This document shows positions 2,555 to 21,505 of a DNA stretch of 64,000 nucleotides, one piece after another. Under the pieces are notes generated by a model that was given only the letters and a program-made list of their open reading frames with translations, ran no database searches and had not been told where the DNA came from. The DNA is from Epithemia pelagica (taxonomy: Eukaryota > Protista > Bacillariophyta). The number at the start of each line of letters is the position of its first letter. Positions within the stretch are counted from its first letter, which is position 1. The stretch lies in the NCBI GenBank assembly GCA_946965045.2, contig OX337228.1, forward strand, positions 3,782,001 to 3,846,000, given 5' to 3'. The position numbers and the translations under genes are program-made.

Positions 2555-5500
2555 CTATAAACGAAGCGTCCCTGTCGCGCTCGACCTACTCCTTATTGCT
2601 CGTGGGTTTCGTCGTCTGAAGAACCGCCTTCTAATAGATGCACTGCCCCGTGAAAATTGTGGACGATCAAGTATTGTGGCTGTTGGAATTTCAGTGCGAT
2701 TTTCCTCCATTGTTGTTGCCGTTGTTGGTATTCCCATTTCGTTCAACGACGGTAAAACTCCGTTAACAGGTGTGCGTAGTGCGGGTGGGAGCTCATGGAA
2801 TCCATCACTCCCCAAAACGGATGGTTCAAATGACAAATCACGTGAGTTCTGTTCCTCCCATGGCACAAAAGATCCAGGATCGGTGTCTGTCATGCTTCTG
2901 TCAGTTTCGGATCCACGCTGAACCAGAACGTCGCGGAAGTTTCCGAGGTGTGGATCATTTATTCTCAAATCAACCAAGACAGTCGCAATCATTTTGTCCT
3001 TGTTCCTCCTTTGGGATGAGGGCATATATTCACTCCTAGTTGCATCCCCACCGTCGCCATCGTTGGCGTCGTTACTGGAAGTAGCTGGCCCTGGCTGTCT
3101 CTTTCGCGCTGCGAGAAGAGGAACAAGGAAAAGGACAAGTAATGCAATGAGCGCGTATTGCCAATTGTCGTTGGACGAATTGTCTCCACTTTCAGTTTCT
3201 TTATCAGGCCCTTCGCCCTCCTCCTCAAGAGTGCGTTCGTCCTCGAAATAAATGTCACCAAGCAGGCTACCGTTTTGCGGAGAAAGATTTTCGTCATTGT
3301 CGGGAATAAAAAATGACGACCCTCCAGTACTGTCATCCACGGAATCACCTACGTCTGGAGATGAATCTCCGTCTTCAGAAGCGGACCCTTCCGGAAGGGC
3401 CGGGTCTATTGGGGCCCTTCCAATTTCAGGGCACCTTCCATCGGGCAAGGGCTCCACTCTAACTATCTTGCCATGGACGATAGTTGTACATCGCGGCACA
3501 CATTCTCCGAGGGTGTAGTTACAGATATGCGATGTACCCAAACAGTCTCGGGGACAATAAAAAGTCGGGCAAACTCTGACAGGGTTCGGCTGGAATAATA
3601 AAACTGTAAGAATGGGCAGAAGAGAATCACGGTAATGCTGCTCGGTCTGAATCACTTACGCAAATAATAGTTTCCTTCCGATTCTGAGTTAAGATCGGCT
3701 TCCCCTCGTAAGGGCATCGATGCCATTTCCCCTCTACTTGGACTCTTAAACTCTTGTCAGTGACCACACAAGCAATTCTTAAACACAACGCCATGCGTGA
3801 TCCTGACGGAGTAGAATGACTAGAAAGACAACGAGAGTTCCGGCTGCCAACCCGCTCGGTTGGGCTGACTCGTATGATTCCTTCATTTCTCGGATCTGAA
3901 CAGAGCCCGTTCTTCAAGCCGTTGTACACTGGACAATAGTCCATGAACGGGTCTTGCCCACCTACATTGGAACCGTACGTCATCGTGAAGTACTGGTACT
4001 CAGGAGGAAGTTCCCCATCATATTGGCTCATTGTGCAAGCAGCCTTGCGAGTGAGGTCGGGAGAACAACCGTCCAAAGAGGTCACAAATCCTTGATTGTC
4101 AATAGTGCTAAGCGAATTGCAAAATAGTTCATCGGAACCAGACACAACTTGTCCATTTGGTTGAATACATGGCTCTTCAACGAATGCACATCCAGCTGCT
4201 CTTCCCCAGATAGCTGGGAAGGCCGCACGTGAAAGATCCACTTGGTACCAACCAGAATCAGCGAAGTACGCGAGAGTGAGTAGAGAAATCAATGGCTCGA
4301 ATCTAAGTTCTTCTACCAGTGGATTCATAATATCCATTTTGAACAGTCGGCGTTCCCAATGATTTCCGATGCATGACATTTCTCCTGGATTTGTAGAAAG
4401 CGGAAGAGCTTCGCCACTTTCCAATTCTGCTCCTTCAAGTTTTTGGCAATCAAAGTGATTCCGTTCCACCTGCGCAACAGATGGAGTCACGACTTCTGCA
4501 ACCCGAACTCCTCCACGAACTATTCGAAAGTCCAGGATTTCCCTGCTGGGCAACTGCATCATAGCTCTGGGACGACCTCCATTTAGACGAGGTCCTGTGC
4601 ACTCTACGAGTGTCTGTGGGATCGCTCCAGTAGCATCGCGCGGTGTCACGGGCGATCCATCCGATCTTCTAAAATGGGCCAAACTTTGAAGATTGAATCC
4701 AAGTGCGTGTCCAAGTTCGTGCATGATTGTCATGATATTTCGAGGTAAGTATTTTGAGTCAAAAAATTCAGGTCCAATGCAAATGTGCAGCATGGCCGCC
4801 GTGGGGCGGTCAAGTTCATTGGTTGAGCAGTATACTGAAGAGGCCAGATAATCGCCAGCGCATTGAGATTTGGGGATTTTTGGAACGAACGCTTGGCTTG
4901 GAGGTGACGTTGTTCCCTCAAAAGTTTCTGCCGCTGACGGAGAGGTGCTCACGTTCCACTCTCCGTCTGTGATCGAACTACCTTCAAAACTTGCAACGTG
5001 CGATGCAACCGGTGAGTCCGAAAAATTTAGCAAAGGGGAATCGGGAGGGTCGGAAGTCTCTACCGAGGGAGCTAATACAGAGGGAGCAGAGATGGGTGAT
5101 GGGTCGGTCTGTGGTTGACCCACAGATTGATCCATAGTAGGCGGTGCAACACTGGGCATTGGAGTTGGTTCAGGGGTGGGTTCATAAACGAATCCCAAGT
5201 CCAAATAAACAACGAGGTCTGTTTCCGGCACACCGTATTTCAAGTGACTCAAGGGTACATGAGCTGTCGGAAGACCCGAATCAATACCAGGTCCGCAGGT
5301 AGTACCATCCAGCCACTGAGATGGATCGAGAGTCAAGTTCTTGTCTGGTCTCTGGACAGGAACTCTTAAAGCTTCGCTCCAAGCAAGAAGTGCTGGTTGT
5401 ACTATTTCTTCTAACAATATTTGTCGCCTTTTTGGGTCTAAATGTTCCCCACCTCCATGGAAATCCGAAAGAACGGCACGAATGCGGATTGGATGAAAAG

Positions 5501-11825: not shown

Positions 11826-14800
11826 ATGCTGCCGTTGGTTGGACGACCATCAGGCAGAGCAACTCATCCACCACAAAACGACGATCAACCATCACATCGG
11901 GTTGGAGACGACGCTATCCCTTCCTCTGGGGAAGATTCAACGCAACAACGACAACGACGCCTTGTTTGGTTGCCTTCCAGCACCGTTCCGTCTCTGTGGA
12001 CCCGAACACGAAGAAGAAGAAACCAAAACAATAACAACGACCAAGTTCCACACAATTCACAGCCACCACAACGACAGACTGGCCCACGTCCTCGTTTCCG
12101 CAATCGAACTGCTCTTGGTCGAACGGTGTCTCCCAGCTCTCTTGCACAACCGTCTTCCGATCATCGTGATTCAGTCGTAATGATTCCGCCATCCAATGCC
12201 GGTGCCTGGTCCACTGCGGCCACTCCTCCCTCCACTACCAGTTCCGCGGCTGTTTGGACGGCCGAAGCTGTCGCGTCCTTGCCTCCTCCAGGTGTTTCGG
12301 GACCCAGTCAAGTCACTTTTTCTCCACCGCCACCAAGAAGAAGAAGGCGAAGACAAGACCTGAAGCAGCCCACCACAGGAGACCCACATCCAACGAATGG
12401 AGTTGGGAACAGTCACCAGGACGAAACTTATGACACAAACCTGCATGATCAACACGGTCCGTCTTCGTCATCGCCCCTTTTTCTAGCTTTTGTCAGTGCT
12501 CCAGGAACAGTCATTCGTACCGCCAAACCACCTCCCAGTATGTTTCGACCACTCACGACAGGATTGTATCCCTCTCCTCCTGGAGGCACTTCGGCAAAAA
12601 ATAGCGGCCGTGCGGCATCATCTTCTGGAGCCGCAGTGCAGCATTCTCAGACCAATCTTCATCCTGACATTTATGGCACGTCATCGAGCCAACCGCCTTC
12701 GGAACCACACCCTCAAACCTCGTCATCTCATGCAACAACAACAACACCTCCCTTTTTCTTCATGCCTTCGTCTGCTTCAACCACGGCCTCTCAACCAACT
12801 GCACGTACGAACCGCAACGTTTCTGCAAAACCACTTTCGTCCATTTCGGAACGTGTCTTGATGTGCCTCGATGTTACAAGTACCGTAGCCTCTCCCACCG
12901 GATCATTCAATGAACCTCAACATACGCACTTGCAACCACACCCCTTGTTGCGCCTCGGTGGAGCGTCCTCTGTGACCACAAAAACCGCTGCAACTGTTTC
13001 CAATCAACACAACAATAACAAACGACGACTGCTGGAATCGGCCGCCTCCTTCGCCTCTTCCTCTTCGTCTTGTTCGTCGTTAGGATATGGTAACAAAGCC
13101 ACTACGACGGTTTCCAAAAAGAAACCAACATCCAAAGAACATCAAAAACATGAAGCACAGGCCTCTCGTAACCATTCATCGTCGTCCATTTCCTTGACAT
13201 CCTCCTCGCAACCCGTAACACAGTTTTCATGGACTTGGTGTTGGCCCTCGACTGGCGTCCTCGACCCTTTTTTGGATAACAACGACGACGACGAGCTTCC
13301 CTTTTTACGCGTCTTGATACCATGGAGGGGGAACTTGTTTGTTCAAGACGGGGTTTCTTTCACCTCTCACCTTGGTAGCAGTGACGGTAGTCGTCGACGA
13401 CAACGACCGACTGTGCATTCCAAGAACAGGAAGGATCAGGATGACAATGACATGACACACGACGAACCTCGCTGTATCTACAATGCCTTGTCTTCGTCCA
13501 ACTCGTTGAGTAGTCCCTGTATTGATCCACAACTGTCACCAGACGGAAGCATGGTGGCATGGGCAGCGAACGGAGAACTATTTGTACAGTCTTGTGGGGA
13601 TTCGTACCTTGCTGAGAAGCAGGACTCTGTGGGCAGTCGCGCCAAACGATCTGGTAATTCTTCTCCTCGGGATGCATCTAGTTCTGAATCATCTCCAACT
13701 CCCATACAAATTACATTTGGCGCCGTCCAAACAACAGAACTTTGTATCAGTCATGGCATTGCGGAGTTCGTTGCACAAGAAGAAATGGATCGATACAGAG
13801 GATTTTGGTGGCATCCTCAATCTACAGGCATCTTGTTTGTCCGGGTTGATGAATCTCATGTTCCACCATTTCGAATCTTGCATCACCATGATGCCACCAC
13901 CACCGGACAATCGTCATCAAGCGCTCAGTCGACAACAACGGCGAGTGAATCGCCCTTGTCACCTGGTCACCAACCATCACAATCACAACCACCCCTCTCT
14001 TCGTCAGCCATTCCATACGAAGATCATCGCTATCCCTTTGCTGGAAAAATGAATCCCAAAGTGCAATTAGCATATGTCGAAATTGATCGACAGTCCATCC
14101 TATCCCCCCACACGGTCCAACCTTCAACTGATCCTTCGACCTCCACCCACCCAACCAACCGTGCAACGAATTGTAACACGAAGACAAAGACCGTGCCAAA
14201 TACCACGACGACACCGCCTTATCAATCTAGCTCCGCATCTTCCGAATCAAGCGCCACGGACAGCTGTGCCATGATGATGATGGATGATGACGAGGACGAC
14301 GACCGCGCCGAACAAATCTCGACCATGTCGTCGTCTTCGTCGTCTCCTCCTCGTCGACAAGGTAATGCCGAGACGATTGCGATGGAATCTTCCCCTCCTC
14401 CTTCAAATGGAGGCTCAGTGTCACCGACCCATCATCATTCACCATCCAACACGCGAAGCAATGGAAGTGGGACTTTTGCGGCACAAGATATTGCACGCGA
14501 GAAATGGACTGAATGTACATGGTTGGACGCACCGCAAGAAGCATCGGAATATTTGGCCCGAATTCGTTGGTTGCCAAATGGGTCGGCCGTTGCGCAATGG
14601 CAGAATCGCGCGCAAAATTTATCCATTCTTGTACTCATGGAACTTCCATCTGCCACGACTCCTCCATCGTCCTCGTCAGTGCGACGACGCAACAAACGCT
14701 CCAGCCAAGTACTCCTTATGGAGCAAAGTGAAGAATGGATCAATTTGCACAACATGTTTCATGTATTGCCAAGAGCTGTGCACCCCGATGAATGCATTGT

Positions 14801-16694
14801 TACTTCGACAGCTGGTACTGCGCATTCGGACAAGGTGCATAATGTGCAAATTCCGTCACTTCCTAATCCCTTGCCGGAAGGTAGTTTCAGTTTTCTATTT
14901 GCCTCTGAACGGACAGGATATCAACACTTGTACCTCTATACCTACTGCCCAGGTATCACCAGCGCGGGCCGACTGGGCAACCATGACCATTCCAATTATT
15001 ACCATTCGCAACAGCAGCCACAACCGCAATTCCAACAAGCAGCCATACCACTACGAACTGTCTCGGCGGGGAAATGGATGGTAGAGAGTATAGCTGGTGT
15101 TGACATGGACCAAGACGTTGTTTACGTTACCGGTACCTATGATTCGGTTCTGGAACGGCATCTGTATGCCTTGCCCTTGTTGAATCGACGATTGGTGGTC
15201 CAACCCTCTCTTGCCGCTACAACGACATCAACCGCTCTTGATGGATCATGTGACGTGGACCATTCCGACCCAAACCACCATTCATTGTTGTTGAATCATA
15301 CGGCTACCAAGGGTGTACGACGAGGGTTGAGTAAAGTGATGCATGTTCTCTCCGGAAAGGGAAATTTGGGTCGAAGCAATAGCAACAGTGGCAATCATCG
15401 CACGACTTACACAAATCGTGTTCTACAAGAAGCAATATGGGCAAGCATGAGACCTGTCCGATTAACGTTGGAAGCTGGTATGCACAGCATTGTTATGGAT
15501 GATCTATGTCGACTGTTCGTCGACACCAGCAGTGATATGGACCGACCTACGTCATCTCGCATTTATCAACTCCCACCCAAGCAAGGAGATTTTTGGACTA
15601 CCTTTCTACAAAGACAAACAGAACCAGTAGAACTGCAGTTGGTGTACACCCTCTATGATGCACTTAAAGAAGATAATTCTGTTTCGTCGGCTGCTGCTGG
15701 CTCAATCGCTGTGGGAGGAACTGCCGCTGCAGCACTACCATCCCCTCTGCATGGATTCCCCAGTGGTGGCGCTCGTCTTTTGGCGAGTTTACCGCCTCCA
15801 GAATTGATCTCATTTCCATGTTCGGATGGTATTGAAACATTGCATGCGGCATTATATCGTCCGAATCCTCGTATTTATGGACCAGGTCCATATCCATTGG
15901 TCTGTGCCGTTTATGGTGGCCCTCACGTCCAACGAGTCAACCGTTCCTGGTCGCAATGTGCCGATATGCGGGCACAGAGGTTACGAAGTATGGGATTTTG
16001 CGTCATCAAGTGTGACAATCGAGGTTCAAGCCGTCGTGGATTGGAGTTTGAAGCTGCCATTCGTCGTCGGTTGGGACGGTTGGAGGTGTTGGATCAAGTG
16101 GCAGCAGCTCGGCAATTGATCTTGCGTGGTTTGGTCGATGCCTCCCGGATAGGAGTGTATGGATGGTCGTATGGAGGATATTTGGCTGCCATGTGCCTGA
16201 GTCGCGCTCCCGATGTCTTTTGCTGTGCTGTAGCGGGTGCTCCTGTTACAAGTTGGGATGGATACGATACGCATTATACCGAGCGATACATGGGTCATCC
16301 TCAAGACAATGTCATTGGATATCGTGAATCGGCCGTGCTGGATCATGTGCCCAACATCAAGGGCAAACTGCTATTGGTACATGGGTTACTGGATGAAAAC
16401 GTTCATTTTCGCCATACAACTCGGCTAATCAACAAACTTGTTGCATGCGGGAAAGAGTACGAGGTTTTGTTGTTTCCTGAAGAACGACATTCACCACGAC
16501 GATTGCGAGATCGGATATATATGGAACAACGAATCAGTGATTTCTTTGTCCGAAATTTGCTCATGTCGCCGGGGTCCTCCCCTGCAGGAACTGCAAGTCA
16601 TTCGCGAATGATACGTTCGGCAGCCTTGGATCCACCCTCTGCCAGTGGAACCGGTAATGCAGCTGGGATGATGCGTACATTAGGGCATTTGTAA
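11826..16694 (+). CDS. Dipeptidyl peptidase IV/DPP8-9 family (S9B) serine peptidase with long low-complexity extensions
   Basis: AEFVAQEEMDRYRGFWW, YPFAGKMNP, GWSYGG nucleophile, LDENVHF and PEERH (Ser-Asp-His triad). Confidence 0.9.
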   Translation: MLPLVGRPSGRATHPPQNDDQPSHRVGDDAIPSSGEDSTQQRQRRLVWLPSSTVPSLWTRTRRRRNQNNNNDQVPHNSQPPQRQTGPRPRFRNRTALGRTVSPSSLAQPSSDHRDSVVMIPPSNAGAWSTAATPPSTTSSAAVWTAEAVASLPPPGVSGPSQVTFSPPPPRRRRRRQDLKQPTTGDPHPTNGVGNSHQDETYDTNLHDQHGPSSSSPLFLAFVSAPGTVIRTAKPPPSMFRPLTTGLYPSPPGGTSAKNSGRAASSSGAAVQHSQTNLHPDIYGTSSSQPPSEPHPQTSSSHATTTTPPFFFMPSSASTTASQPTARTNRNVSAKPLSSISERVLMCLDVTSTVASPTGSFNEPQHTHLQPHPLLRLGGASSVTTKTAATVSNQHNNNKRRLLESAASFASSSSSCSSLGYGNKATTTVSKKKPTSKEHQKHEAQASRNHSSSSISLTSSSQPVTQFSWTWCWPSTGVLDPFLDNNDDDELPFLRVLIPWRGNLFVQDGVSFTSHLGSSDGSRRRQRPTVHSKNRKDQDDNDMTHDEPRCIYNALSSSNSLSSPCIDPQLSPDGSMVAWAANGELFVQSCGDSYLAEKQDSVGSRAKRSGNSSPRDASSSESSPTPIQITFGAVQTTELCISHGIAEFVAQEEMDRYRGFWWHPQSTGILFVRVDESHVPPFRILHHHDATTTGQSSSSAQSTTTASESPLSPGHQPSQSQPPLSSSAIPYEDHRYPFAGKMNPKVQLAYVEIDRQSILSPHTVQPSTDPSTSTHPTNRATNCNTKTKTVPNTTTTPPYQSSSASSESSATDSCAMMMMDDDEDDDRAEQISTMSSSSSSPPRRQGNAETIAMESSPPPSNGGSVSPTHHHSPSNTRSNGSGTFAAQDIAREKWTECTWLDAPQEASEYLARIRWLPNGSAVAQWQNRAQNLSILVLMELPSATTPPSSSSVRRRNKRSSQVLLMEQSEEWINLHNMFHVLPRAVHPDECIVTSTAGTAHSDKVHNVQIPSLPNPLPEGSFSFLFASERTGYQHLYLYTYCPGITSAGRLGNHDHSNYYHSQQQPQPQFQQAAIPLRTVSAGKWMVESIAGVDMDQDVVYVTGTYDSVLERHLYALPLLNRRLVVQPSLAATTTSTALDGSCDVDHSDPNHHSLLLNHTATKGVRRGLSKVMHVLSGKGNLGRSNSNSGNHRTTYTNRVLQEAIWASMRPVRLTLEAGMHSIVMDDLCRLFVDTSSDMDRPTSSRIYQLPPKQGDFWTTFLQRQTEPVELQLVYTLYDALKEDNSVSSAAAGSIAVGGTAAAALPSPLHGFPSGGARLLASLPPPELISFPCSDGIETLHAALYRPNPRIYGPGPYPLVCAVYGGPHVQRVNRSWSQCADMRAQRLRSMGFCVIKCDNRGSSRRGLEFEAAIRRRLGRLEVLDQVAAARQLILRGLVDASRIGVYGWSYGGYLAAMCLSRAPDVFCCAVAGAPVTSWDGYDTHYTERYMGHPQDNVIGYRESAVLDHVPNIKGKLLLVHGLLDENVHFRHTTRLINKLVACGKEYEVLLFPEERHSPRRLRDRIYMEQRISDFFVRNLLMSPGSSPAGTASHSRMIRSAALDPPSASGTGNAAGMMRTLGHL

Positions 16695-19366: not shown

Positions 19367-19506
19367 ATCCAAATCGAACTCTTTGGTTTATCACCTATGA
19401 CTATCCTATGTTTGCTGAGAGGCTCTACTGGCTATGATCCAAATCGAACTCTTTGGTTTATCACCTATGACTATCCTATGTTTGCTGAGAGGCTCTACTG
19501 GCTATG
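19367..19506. repeat. Perfect 70-bp tandem duplication (2 copies: 19367-19436, 19437-19506)
   Basis: ATCCAAATCGAACTC...GGCTCTACTGGCTATG repeated identically head to tail. Confidence 0.95.
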
Positions 19507-19535
19507 GCTAATGGATGTCACGAGAACTTTGAGCT

Positions 19536-19555
19536 ATTATTTATATTTAATAAAT
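19536..19555 (+). promoter_or_regulatory. TATA-like AT-rich tract upstream of the permuted tRNA (putative external Pol III promoter)
   Basis: TATTATTTATATTTAATAAAT-type tract about 35-50 nt upstream of the tRNA 3' half; function inferred. Confidence 0.5.
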
Positions 19556-19587
19556 TCGTCGTTCCGTCAGGATCGTAGATGTAGTCC

Positions 19588-19671
19588 ATCAGGAGATTCC
19601 GGGTTCGAATCCCGGGCAGGTTTCTTAGCCCTGTTGACCTGTTGGCCCAATGGTAAGGCGCCTGACTACGG
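19588..19671 (+). tRNA. tRNA-Arg(ACG): Circularly permuted tRNA-Arg(ACG): 3' half 19588-19623, 12-nt spacer 19624-19635, 5' half 19636-19671
   Basis: Rejoined sequence GACCTGT TG GCCC AATGGTA AGGC G CCTGA CT ACG G|A TCAGG AGATT CCGGG TTCGAAT CCCGG GCAGGTT T folds with a 7-bp acceptor stem (2 G-U), D arm, 5-bp anticodon stem and 5-bp T stem; B box lies upstream of A box. Confidence 0.85.
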
Positions 19672-19682
19672 AACGACATCTC

Positions 19683-19687
19683 TTTTT
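19683..19687 (+). terminator. Putative Pol III terminator (T5) after the permuted tRNA trailer
   Basis: TTTTT 11 nt downstream of the 5' half; no run of 4 or more T occurs within the leader, either half or the spacer. Confidence 0.55.
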
Positions 19688-19807
19688 GCTTTTCCCTCTT
19701 GGGACAAAGATTCGTTTCATCTCACACAAGATCCACTTCTTTCTGCGTCGTCGATCGTCGATGTCGACATAGAAACACAATCCATACCCTCTATTATACA
19801 GCAACAG

Positions 19808-21505
19808 ATGAAGCAATCCCCTTCTATGGTCGTTGGGAGTGCCACGCGCCATGATTTGCGCTTATGGGCCGCTGTTGTGGTCATCGGCCTGGTGGGAGGA
19901 TTCACTCCTGCCATGGCGGCAACCCTCGAGTATCAAGTTGGAGTTCAACCCTCCACACCGGTCCGATTGACCAAAGGCAATCTAAAAATGGCCATTCAAG
20001 ACGATCCTGTCAATCCAGTTTGGTTCCTCAAATTCTTTGCTCCCTGGTGTGGACATTGCAAAAGATTGGCACCGGTACGACAACCATAACCAAAATCACT
20101 TCTGTCTGCTGACTTTCTTCCTTTCTCTCACACTTGTGTGTTTGTGTATGTGTTTCTCTAGGTATTGGAGCAAGCGGCTGCCGAGCTGCAGGGGAAAATG
20201 GCGATTGGAACCATTGATTGTACATCCGAACGGAAATTGTGCGATGAATACAACGTACGAGGATATCCCACTTTGAAATACAGTCTCCATGGAACGGCGG
20301 ATACGAATGGCAAATCCGACATGCCTGCCTTGTACGAGTACAAGGGGGGTCGTAAGGTGCCCGATATTGTTCAGTTGGGACGGCAATTGACGCGACCAGC
20401 CCTTCAAATGGTCTCGAATATGGAACAAGCCCTTGATTTGGAAAAAGGAGAAGAGGATTGGAATCACCATGATCGTGTTGTGTTCATGGTCCATCATCCA
20501 ACGTTAGTCCAATATAAAGACCAATTGTCGGGAACTCAACAAAAGGAAGATGACTCAAAATCGACTTCCCCTCAAGCAATTGTGGGCCAGGTGACACCAT
20601 TGACAAATATCTTTGGACAAGTGGCACGCAAATATCGGGCCACGACTGAGTTTCAAGTGTTGGTTCAAGGCAAACCCTCGGAACAAGACGACAGTGAAAA
20701 AGCCACAATTGAGTCGGCGACCGAAACGGATTTGTCAACGATACGATACCTCTCCTCCTTCGTCGGATCGACGGCCTTTGTCTGTCGCTTGGAGCGCCAT
20801 GTTCCGGTTCAGTGCTTGTCTGTGTTGCCCGACCCAGAAGCTGAAGATCCCAGTCACGATCCCACTGTCGACTTTGCGTATCTCGAACGCTTTGTGGCCT
20901 CAAATCGTCATCCCACGGTAACTCAATTAGGACCCCACAATTTTCAGGCTCTCAAACAAGGAGGACGACCACTGGTCATTGGCGTCGTTCAAGTATCCGA
21001 TGTATCGCAAGTTGTCGCCATGAAACAAGTCTTGGTCGACGTGGCCACTTCTCCAACCCACAGTCATTTGAAAGAGGCTTATTTCTTTTGTTGGATGGAT
21101 GGTATCCGATACAGTCGATTTTTAGAACAATTTGGAATTGGTTCCAATGACAATGATCCAACGTCGACATTGCCCCAACTGTTGGTCTTGGACAGTGACA
21201 AGGGTGTTTATTGGCACGACAAGAATCAAACCTACCATGTCATAAACGATGCTGCCAAGTTTGTGCAACATGTCCACGATGGTACCTTGGAATCGCGTCC
21301 GACAGAGACATCTAAAAAGAACGGCAATGTCTTGACCCAGCTTTATTGGATGGTCATTGAAAATCAACCATGGTCCATTGTTTGGCTTGCAGTTTTGGTC
21401 ATTCTAATAGCCCTTATCATTACCACGATTATTTCAGAACCAGAACCATCCCCACCCCAACGACAACCGACTGCACCACCACCCGAGACCAAAAAGGCCC
21501 AGTAA
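19808..21505 (+). CDS. Protein disulfide isomerase-family, TMX3-like membrane thioredoxin; intron 20075-20161
   Basis: Signal peptide, FFAPWCGHCKRLAP|VLEQAA across a GT-AG intron, YNVRGYPTL, further thioredoxin-like folds, C-terminal TM helix. Confidence 0.85.

Follow-up and report, generated by a model that had tools for sequence, protein, structure and literature searches.

The 84 nucleotides at positions 19588-19671 of the stretch of Epithemia pelagica DNA analysed here (64 kb in full, hereafter the window) probably constitute a working diatom gene, nuclear and circularly permuted, for the cytosolic tRNA-Arg(ACG). Its break, between tRNA positions 37 and 38, is that of type II, and it recurs in four or more independent contexts of leader and trailer. 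An initial annotation of the window had already proposed a permuted tRNA-Arg(ACG) interrupted there, and every part of this reading that could be tested held.

The 3' half (19588-19623, plus strand; ATCAGG...GGCAGGTTT), delimited by ARAGORN and by the sequence, covers tRNA positions 38-73. It contains the 3' strand of the anticodon stem, the variable loop, the T arm, the 3' strand of the acceptor stem and the discriminator U73, the B box GGTTCGAATCC occupying 19602-19612. On the same strand it is followed by a 12-nt spacer (CTTAGCCCTGTT, 19624-19635), read from the sequence as the loop that closes the acceptor stem, and by the 5' half (19636-19671; GACCTGTTGG...CTGACTACGG), delimited by ARAGORN and the Rfam tRNA model (RF00005). 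The latter covers tRNA positions 1-37, with the 5' strand of the acceptor stem, the D arm, the 5' strand of the anticodon stem and the loop bases C32-U33-A34-C35-G36-G37; the A box TGGCCCAATGG is located at 19643-19653 (plus strand), and position 20, in the D arm, is U. Checked against the sequence, the coordinates, the letters and the 36+12+36 layout are exactly those of the initial annotation. The two boxes of the internal promoter therefore come in reverse of the usual order, B before A. The consensus bases U8, A14, A15/U48, G18G19, U33 and TTCGA can all be read directly from the letters, and CCA is not encoded, the spacer beginning with CTT.

In native order, ARAGORN reported no tRNA over the 64 kb and Rfam gave no match at gathering thresholds, in agreement with the earlier expectation that standard scans would overlook the gene. 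When the 5' half was placed before the 3' half, as had been suggested as a check, ARAGORN returned a 72-nt tRNA-Arg(ACG) with a normal cloverleaf: an acceptor stem of 7 bp including two G-U pairs, a D stem of 3 bp, an anticodon stem of 5 bp and a T stem of 5 bp, with a perfect 7-nt anticodon loop, C-U-A-C-G-G-A. The tRNA model RF00005, which gives no match in native order, aligns positions 19636-19671 to its positions 1-36 as a weak, 3'-truncated match if the stretch is cut at G37; the matches listed for the 3' half were T-arm matches of other families. Allowing up to 3 mismatches, the window has a single copy of each half (shuffled sequences give an expectation of 0). A looser search near the unit, tolerating up to 6-7 substitutions, revealed no partner halves, so that, as annotated before, a 5' half is missing ahead of the first piece, as is a 3' half after the second. 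The codons served by this isoacceptor were also said to be heavily used in the window, and indeed CGT, CGC and CGA make up 71-77% of the arginine codons in its long ORFs.

As a permuted gene mimics an intron-containing one when the sequence is doubled, we also ran ARAGORN on sliding segments concatenated to themselves, a procedure that detects junctions in the anticodon loop only. tRNA-Arg(ACG) was recovered in 21 overlapping segments. For other permuted tRNAs, neither the window nor about 200 kb of fetched loci provided a reproducible candidate that withstood inspection: singletons near 4200 and 38600 failed to reproduce, and a reproducible "tRNA-Ser(UGA)" in a Thalassiosira profunda locus (L012; GCA_036939355.2) was a false positive produced by an array of palindromic repeats. 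This array (L012:11600-11830) consists of about nine palindromic units ATCGGGGTATACCCCGAT framed by the inverted sequences CACGTGATTCAC and GTGAATCACGTG; it is situated between an adenylate-kinase gene and the following one, has a MITE-like look, and fools ARAGORN when the sequence is doubled.

The arrangement is not restricted to the window. A scan of JGI metagenome contigs for the end of the 3' half followed, after a gap of 6-36 nt, by the start of the 5' half returned three contigs from three metagenomes (L001, L002 and L003). L001 and L002 represent one locus type sampled in two metagenomes, with both halves 100% identical to those of the window and a spacer of 18 nt; L003 (1491-1568, minus strand) carries three substitutions in each half and a spacer of 6 nt. 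In all three, the native order gave no tRNA and ARAGORN found tRNA-Arg(ACG) once the halves had been rejoined, and the BLAST homology to the window was confined to the unit (19588-19671 for L001/L002, 19581-19673 for L003). Two contigs of the sequencing run X8 add a further locus. In the first, identity with the window starts exactly at 19588 and stops at 19623; the second runs from GTTT through a 24-nt spacer into an entire 5' half, after which come a trailer unlike that of the window and a T5 run. Thus the window, L001-L003 and X8 all present the 3' half before the 5' half, on the same strand and with a short spacer, the arrangement that Soma 2007 defined. Spacer length varies among the loci (6, 12, 18 and 24 nt). 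Between the window, L001/L002 and X8 there is no difference in the 72 coding nucleotides (72/72), and the leaders, the trailers and most of the spacers are unrelated. The motif GCCCTGT is common to the spacers of the window, L001/L002 and X7.

The last of these, X7, is an ice metatranscriptome run with a 649-nt contig in which identity with the 3' half, here 100%, begins exactly at 19588, the match to the window extending over 19588-19634. In this contig, 565 nt of other sequence precede the match, and the 3' half and 11 nt of the window spacer are followed by ATCCTGGAAGCAAAAGCTTCC..., which can form a 6-bp hairpin, and not by the 5' half. The contig could be chimeric, or it could represent a 3' half on its own or a locus whose spacer is longer. 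Back-joints were not reported in the assembled contigs of the runs that hold the locus, including this contig from an RNA library.

The new loci also settle the position of the junction. The 5' half stops at G37 and the 3' half begins at A38, which places the break at 37/38. The initial annotation had named 38/39 as also possible, since an A flanks both ends; this second option is ruled out because in L001/L002 the base that follows G37 is C, and the 37/38 assignment stands. Across the three distinct full units, 96.7% of the structure cells of the tRNA body form standard pairs, compared with 19-50% when the partners are slid, and one compensatory change is present, at pair 27-43 of L003. In the same locus two T-stem pairs are broken (GG to AA), so that L003 is possibly a decaying copy. 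The 4.6-kb contig that carries it has no ORF of at least 100 aa. Taken as a whole, the comparison between loci argues that the permuted tRNA-Arg(ACG) gene is real, recurrent and selectively maintained in diatoms.

We also looked beside the neighbouring genes in other diatoms. No Arg halves or tRNAs were found beside the orthologues of the gene downstream of the unit in Epithemia clementina GCA_051400955.1 and in two contigs of ENA ERZ25042306 (neighbourhoods L004-L006), nor beside the orthologues of the gene that adjoins the unit in L002 (L007-L015, including Thalassiosira profunda GCA_036939355.2). A prokaryote genome collection searched with the 5' half and viral contigs searched with the 5' half and with the junction of a conventional gene gave 0 matches; both collections are poor in diatom DNA, and these blanks therefore say little.

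Regarding the host, a gene for a PDI/TMX3-like thioredoxin membrane protein (19808-21505, plus strand, identified by homology) begins 137 nt past the tRNA unit, in the same orientation. A short intron appears to divide it, between the end of an ORF at 20089 and position 20165, where the exon 20165-21505 starts. An Atlas look-up placed its product in the PDI/thioredoxin family, and all homologues with names are from diatoms (Epithemia, 37% identity, then Entomoneis, Mayamaea, Seminavis and Cyclotella). As the best diatom homologue is only 37% identical, there is no close relative among the proteins searched. Epithemia belongs to the Bacillariophyceae. In L002, the gene adjoining the unit encodes a fatty-acid desaturase fused to cytochrome b5, and its named homologues, at 64-80% identity, are likewise all from diatoms. 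Diatom nuclear tRNA-Arg has C20 or U20 without exception, and A20 is found in diatom organelles and in most eukaryotes (Igloi 2022, PMC8975779). The rejoined D loop reads A14-A15-U16-G18-G19-U20-A21, and the U at position 20 makes this a tRNA of the diatom nuclear type. The diatom nuclear origin that had been considered probable is thus borne out by the adjoining gene and by U20. Further upstream, a 1622-aa ORF (11826-16694, plus strand) has a DPP-IV N-terminal region, and its prolyl-oligopeptidase S9 domain is confined to the C-terminal half (residues ~888-1578); the first ~880 residues have no Pfam match.

Signals of the kind used by RNA polymerase III can be recognized on both sides of the unit. 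An A+T-only, TATA-like tract, TATTATTTATATTTAATAAATT (19535-19556, plus strand), is situated 32-53 nt upstream of the 3' half and would correspond to a TFIIIB/Pol III promoter element. In the window there is a 12-mer of 12/12 A+T at -43, which has a chance of 0.006 per random 60-nt window span; L001 has a comparable tract of 12/12 at -63 and L003 one of 10/12 at -23. A TATA-like tract is present in each locus type whose upstream sequence is long enough to show it. In Phaeodactylum tricornutum the tRNA genes present an AT-rich region at -30 to -40 (PMC3531208), and the permuted genes of Cyanidioschyzon merolae have a TATA-like element at most 50 bp upstream (PMC3978253). Downstream, a T5 run (19683-19687, plus strand) is the putative Pol III terminator. 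A run of T4 to T6 starts 5-13 nt past G37 in the four independent locus types, at a chance of 0.058-0.075 per locus and of about 1e-5 jointly, and no T4 run exists inside any unit, the longest internal T run in the window unit being 3. The features of a single transcription unit, namely a TATA-like tract upstream, a T-stretch downstream and neither of them in the spacer, are therefore visible in the sequence alone.

The leader (19557-19587, plus strand) was studied by MFE folding, a duplex test and a table of pairing registers. Its segment GTCGTTCCGT (19558-19567, plus strand) pairs with 19668-19677, i.e. with the last four bases of the 5' half (19668-19671) and the first six (19672-19677) of the trailer AACGACATCTC (19672-19682, plus strand), which gives a 10-bp helix between the leader and the loop plus trailer (p=0.0005 against shuffled leaders). 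L001/L002 show a 9-bp pairing (p=0.002) between the trailer GTCTGCTCA and a leader of unrelated sequence, TGAGCAGAC. Not every locus has such a leader/trailer helix: L003 lacks it, that of X8 is weak (5 bp, p=0.08), and the leader of a second allele of the window locus, from run X2, can fold into a hairpin of its own instead.

Closer to the upstream cut, GTAG (19581-19584, plus strand) pairs with loop positions 32-35, and TCC (19585-19587, plus strand) forms together with A38 the bulge that would hold the cut. In the window, the X2 allele and L003, this GTAG lies at -7 to -4, pairs perfectly with C32-C35 and leaves a 4-nt bulge; X8 and X7 have 3/4 positions paired in the -3 register. The layout of L001/L002 has the exact hBHBh' geometry, in the order anticodon stem, bulge U-U-A38, a central segment of 4 nt opposite C32-C35, 2/4 being paired, bulge G36-G37-C, and the outer helix from +2. 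All leader types thus pair 2-4 of 4 nt with positions 32-35 and place the cut before A38 in a bulge of 3-4 nt. The recurrence of this pairing in four independent leader types is suggestive, although not significant (a rough estimate of ~0.07). The bulge-helix-bulge of the window is approximate, with a central helix of 4/4, a bulge of 4 nt and an outer helix displaced by an 18-nt loop. Furthermore, the most stable helix of its MFE fold covers the G37 cleavage site, so that a second, less stable conformer would be needed to offer a substrate resembling a bulge-helix-bulge. The eukaryotic endonuclease relies mainly on the distance from the tRNA body and on the anticodon-intron pair, rather than on a strict motif (PMC4090602); a conserved pair to C32, together with a bulge at the upstream cut, may thus be what matters.

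An alternative, which we consider improbable, is that the locus is a non-functional relic, either of tandem tRNA-Arg genes that lost their outer halves or of a rearrangement that left two inert halves. The real tRNA would then come from conventional genes elsewhere, and the halves would still resemble it through recent origin or gene conversion. That dead copies exist is suggested by L003 with its two broken T-stem pairs, and the 3' half with spacer in X7, not directly followed by a 5' half, also agrees with this explanation. Against it, the break point is identical to the base in all independent loci, and coding parts without a single difference (72/72) are embedded in flanks that cannot be aligned. 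Tracts of 36 nt are, moreover, short for gene conversion. Decay would not account either for the T-run after G37 in 4/4 locus types (~1e-5 by chance), nor for a leader/trailer complementarity that persists in the window and in L001/L002 although the sequences are unrelated, and remnants of the outer halves were not found even by the looser substitution search near the unit.

Still less probable, in our opinion, is a tRNA-like non-coding RNA that works without rejoining, be it a mimic of the Y-RNA/YrlA kind or a source of tRNA halves or of a base-paired nicked tRNA. In a permissive run, the best Rfam match on the native locus was precisely YrlA (RF02553), over its full length, with 30.3 bits and E=4.7e-5, and YrlA RNAs have been described as resembling circularly permuted tRNAs (bioRxiv 10.1101/312249). 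The strands follow the same order in both: outer stem, T arm, closed acceptor-like hairpin, D arm and outer stem. Nevertheless, the 30.3 bits are far under YrlA's gathering score (69), the members of this bacterial family bind Ro60 and are not rejoined, and the outer helix, which in Y RNAs is the Ro60-binding element, is not conserved between our loci in sequence or even in presence. In addition, the termini in the window rebuild a true and perfect anticodon loop on a diatom-type tRNA-Arg body, and a mimic needs neither. We read the YrlA match as an independent recognition of the permuted topology, not as membership in the family.

That the order is real as DNA is confirmed by independently assembled contigs. 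A 1269-nt Logan contig of run X1 spans 19437-19759 with 0 differences, and run X2, which also sampled this organism, supports both sides, with an unchanged downstream part. The X2 allele has 7 substitutions and 3 indels, all of them in the leader, and its 3' half is untouched. These changes are packed in ~50 nt (19531-19580), the tRNA halves and 275 nt downstream being unaltered, and those at 19563-19573 create a near-perfect hairpin in the leader, GTCGTGCC-AGG-CACGAC. A perfect tandem duplication with a 70-bp unit (two copies, 100% identical) occupies 19367-19506 and ends 82 nt upstream of the tRNA unit; the short-read contigs of X1 and X2 break at 19437 because the internal boundary of this duplication is located there, and the tRNA pieces are not involved. 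An assembly or sequencing artefact, that is, a collapse or mis-join of tandem tRNA genes, to which this nearby duplication might lend some credit, can be set aside, since the independent X1 and X2 contigs as well as the three metagenome contigs and those of X8, from unrelated samples, carry the same permuted order; the collapse that the initial annotation had named as a possible objection is excluded.

If the locus is indeed a functional permuted gene, its RNA would mature as follows, every step being inferred by analogy with Cyanidioschyzon merolae. The upstream A+T-only tract would position RNA polymerase III, which would transcribe the leader, the 3' half, the 12-nt spacer, the 5' half and the trailer as one RNA and stop at the T5 run. 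This transcript would fold into a tRNA body in which the spacer closes the acceptor stem and the ends of the coding part form the anticodon stem, while the leader would pair with anticodon-loop positions 32-35 and with the trailer. The tRNA splicing endonuclease would then cut at 19671/19672, after G37, and at 19587/19588, before A38, and a tRNA ligase would join G37 to A38 into an 84-nt circle; homologues of Trl1-type ligases occur in diatoms (PMC4090602). RNase P, acting before 19636, and tRNase Z, acting after 19623, would excise the spacer and open the acceptor stem. Finally, CCA would be added and A34 deaminated to inosine, a modification that ADAT2/3 performs on eukaryotic tRNA-Arg(ACG) (PMC8007984). 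The predicted product is a 75-nt tRNA-Arg(ICG) reading CGU, CGC and CGA.

Permuted tRNA genes are a rare case of an essential gene stored in scrambled form, and a diatom nuclear example that recurs in environmental diatom sequences would extend the phenomenon to the stramenopiles. It would also add as a new isoacceptor Arg(ACG), which serves about three quarters of the arginine codons in the window, and it supplies a tangible explanation for tRNA sets that may come out incomplete in standard scans of diatom genomes. A broader and rather doubtful possibility is that the main arginine tRNA (ICG) of diatoms, or of a large clade of them, derives from permuted genes only and that several more of their tRNA genes are permuted. 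Should this be the case, tRNA maturation through a circular intermediate would be an essential pathway in dominant marine primary producers, the diatom tRNA catalogues based on tRNAscan-SE would have systematic gaps, and the trait would go back either to a red or green algal endosymbiont or to a further, independent invention. This evolutionary question, inheritance with the genes of the secondary endosymbiont versus repeated origin, can now be tested. The natural variants of leader and trailer, in turn, offer material on what the eukaryotic splicing endonuclease really needs.

Permuted tRNA genes have been described in C. merolae, Ostreococcus, Micromonas, the nucleomorph of Bigelowiella natans and the archaeon Thermofilum pendens (Soma 2007; Maruyama 2010; PMC3978253; PMC3218864) and, more recently, in the trebouxiophyte Auxenochlorella (PMC12633428). 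The hosts named in the initial annotation were correct, but its list was slightly incomplete, Auxenochlorella being absent from it. Its statement that no case was known from diatoms or other stramenopiles met with no contrary report in our search of the openly accessible literature. A review of August 2026 on the tRNA genes of photosynthetic organisms lists no stramenopile case (PMC13578239), and PlantRNA 1.0 and 2.0, which include curated heterokonts, list no permuted tRNA genes in stramenopiles. The listed papers in which permuted tRNAs and diatoms are both mentioned contain no such case either. Whether diatoms have a conventional Arg(ACG) gene is not stated in the PlantRNA papers, the 2026 review or the P. 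tricornutum small-RNA paper.

Among the known systems, the archaeon T. pendens (Chan 2011, PMC3218864) shares the permuted order and the processing through a bulge-helix-bulge, but its junction is at 59/60, in the T loop, its spacers measure 1-7 nt and it has extra introns. The resemblance is much closer to the type II genes of Ostreococcus, Micromonas, the B. natans nucleomorph and C. merolae, which have the same order of the halves, the 37/38 junction and a short spacer (the published range is 1-74 nt, and 5-64 nt for type II genes; PMC3978253). As in the window, these genes have an A+T-rich tract upstream and a T-run downstream, with none in the spacer, CCA is not encoded, and leader and trailer can pair around the junction. 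The differences are that the host here is the nuclear genome of a diatom (stramenopile, SAR), that Arg(ACG) does not appear in the table of PMC3978253, and that the bulge-helix-bulge of the window is only approximate (4-nt bulge, and an 18-nt loop between the central and outer helices). In C. merolae, furthermore, the circles were shown by experiment, whereas that of the window gene is a predicted one. Compared with the canonical nuclear introns at 37/38 that are removed by the Sen endonuclease (PMC4090602), both predicted cuts fall at the exact positions of the intron splice sites, a leader G located 3-4 nt before the cut pairs with C32 in the manner of the anticodon-intron pair, and the distance between the tRNA body and the downstream cut is fixed. 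The "intron" here, however, is open-ended, made up of trailer and leader, and for this reason ligation would circularise the RNA instead of joining two exons.
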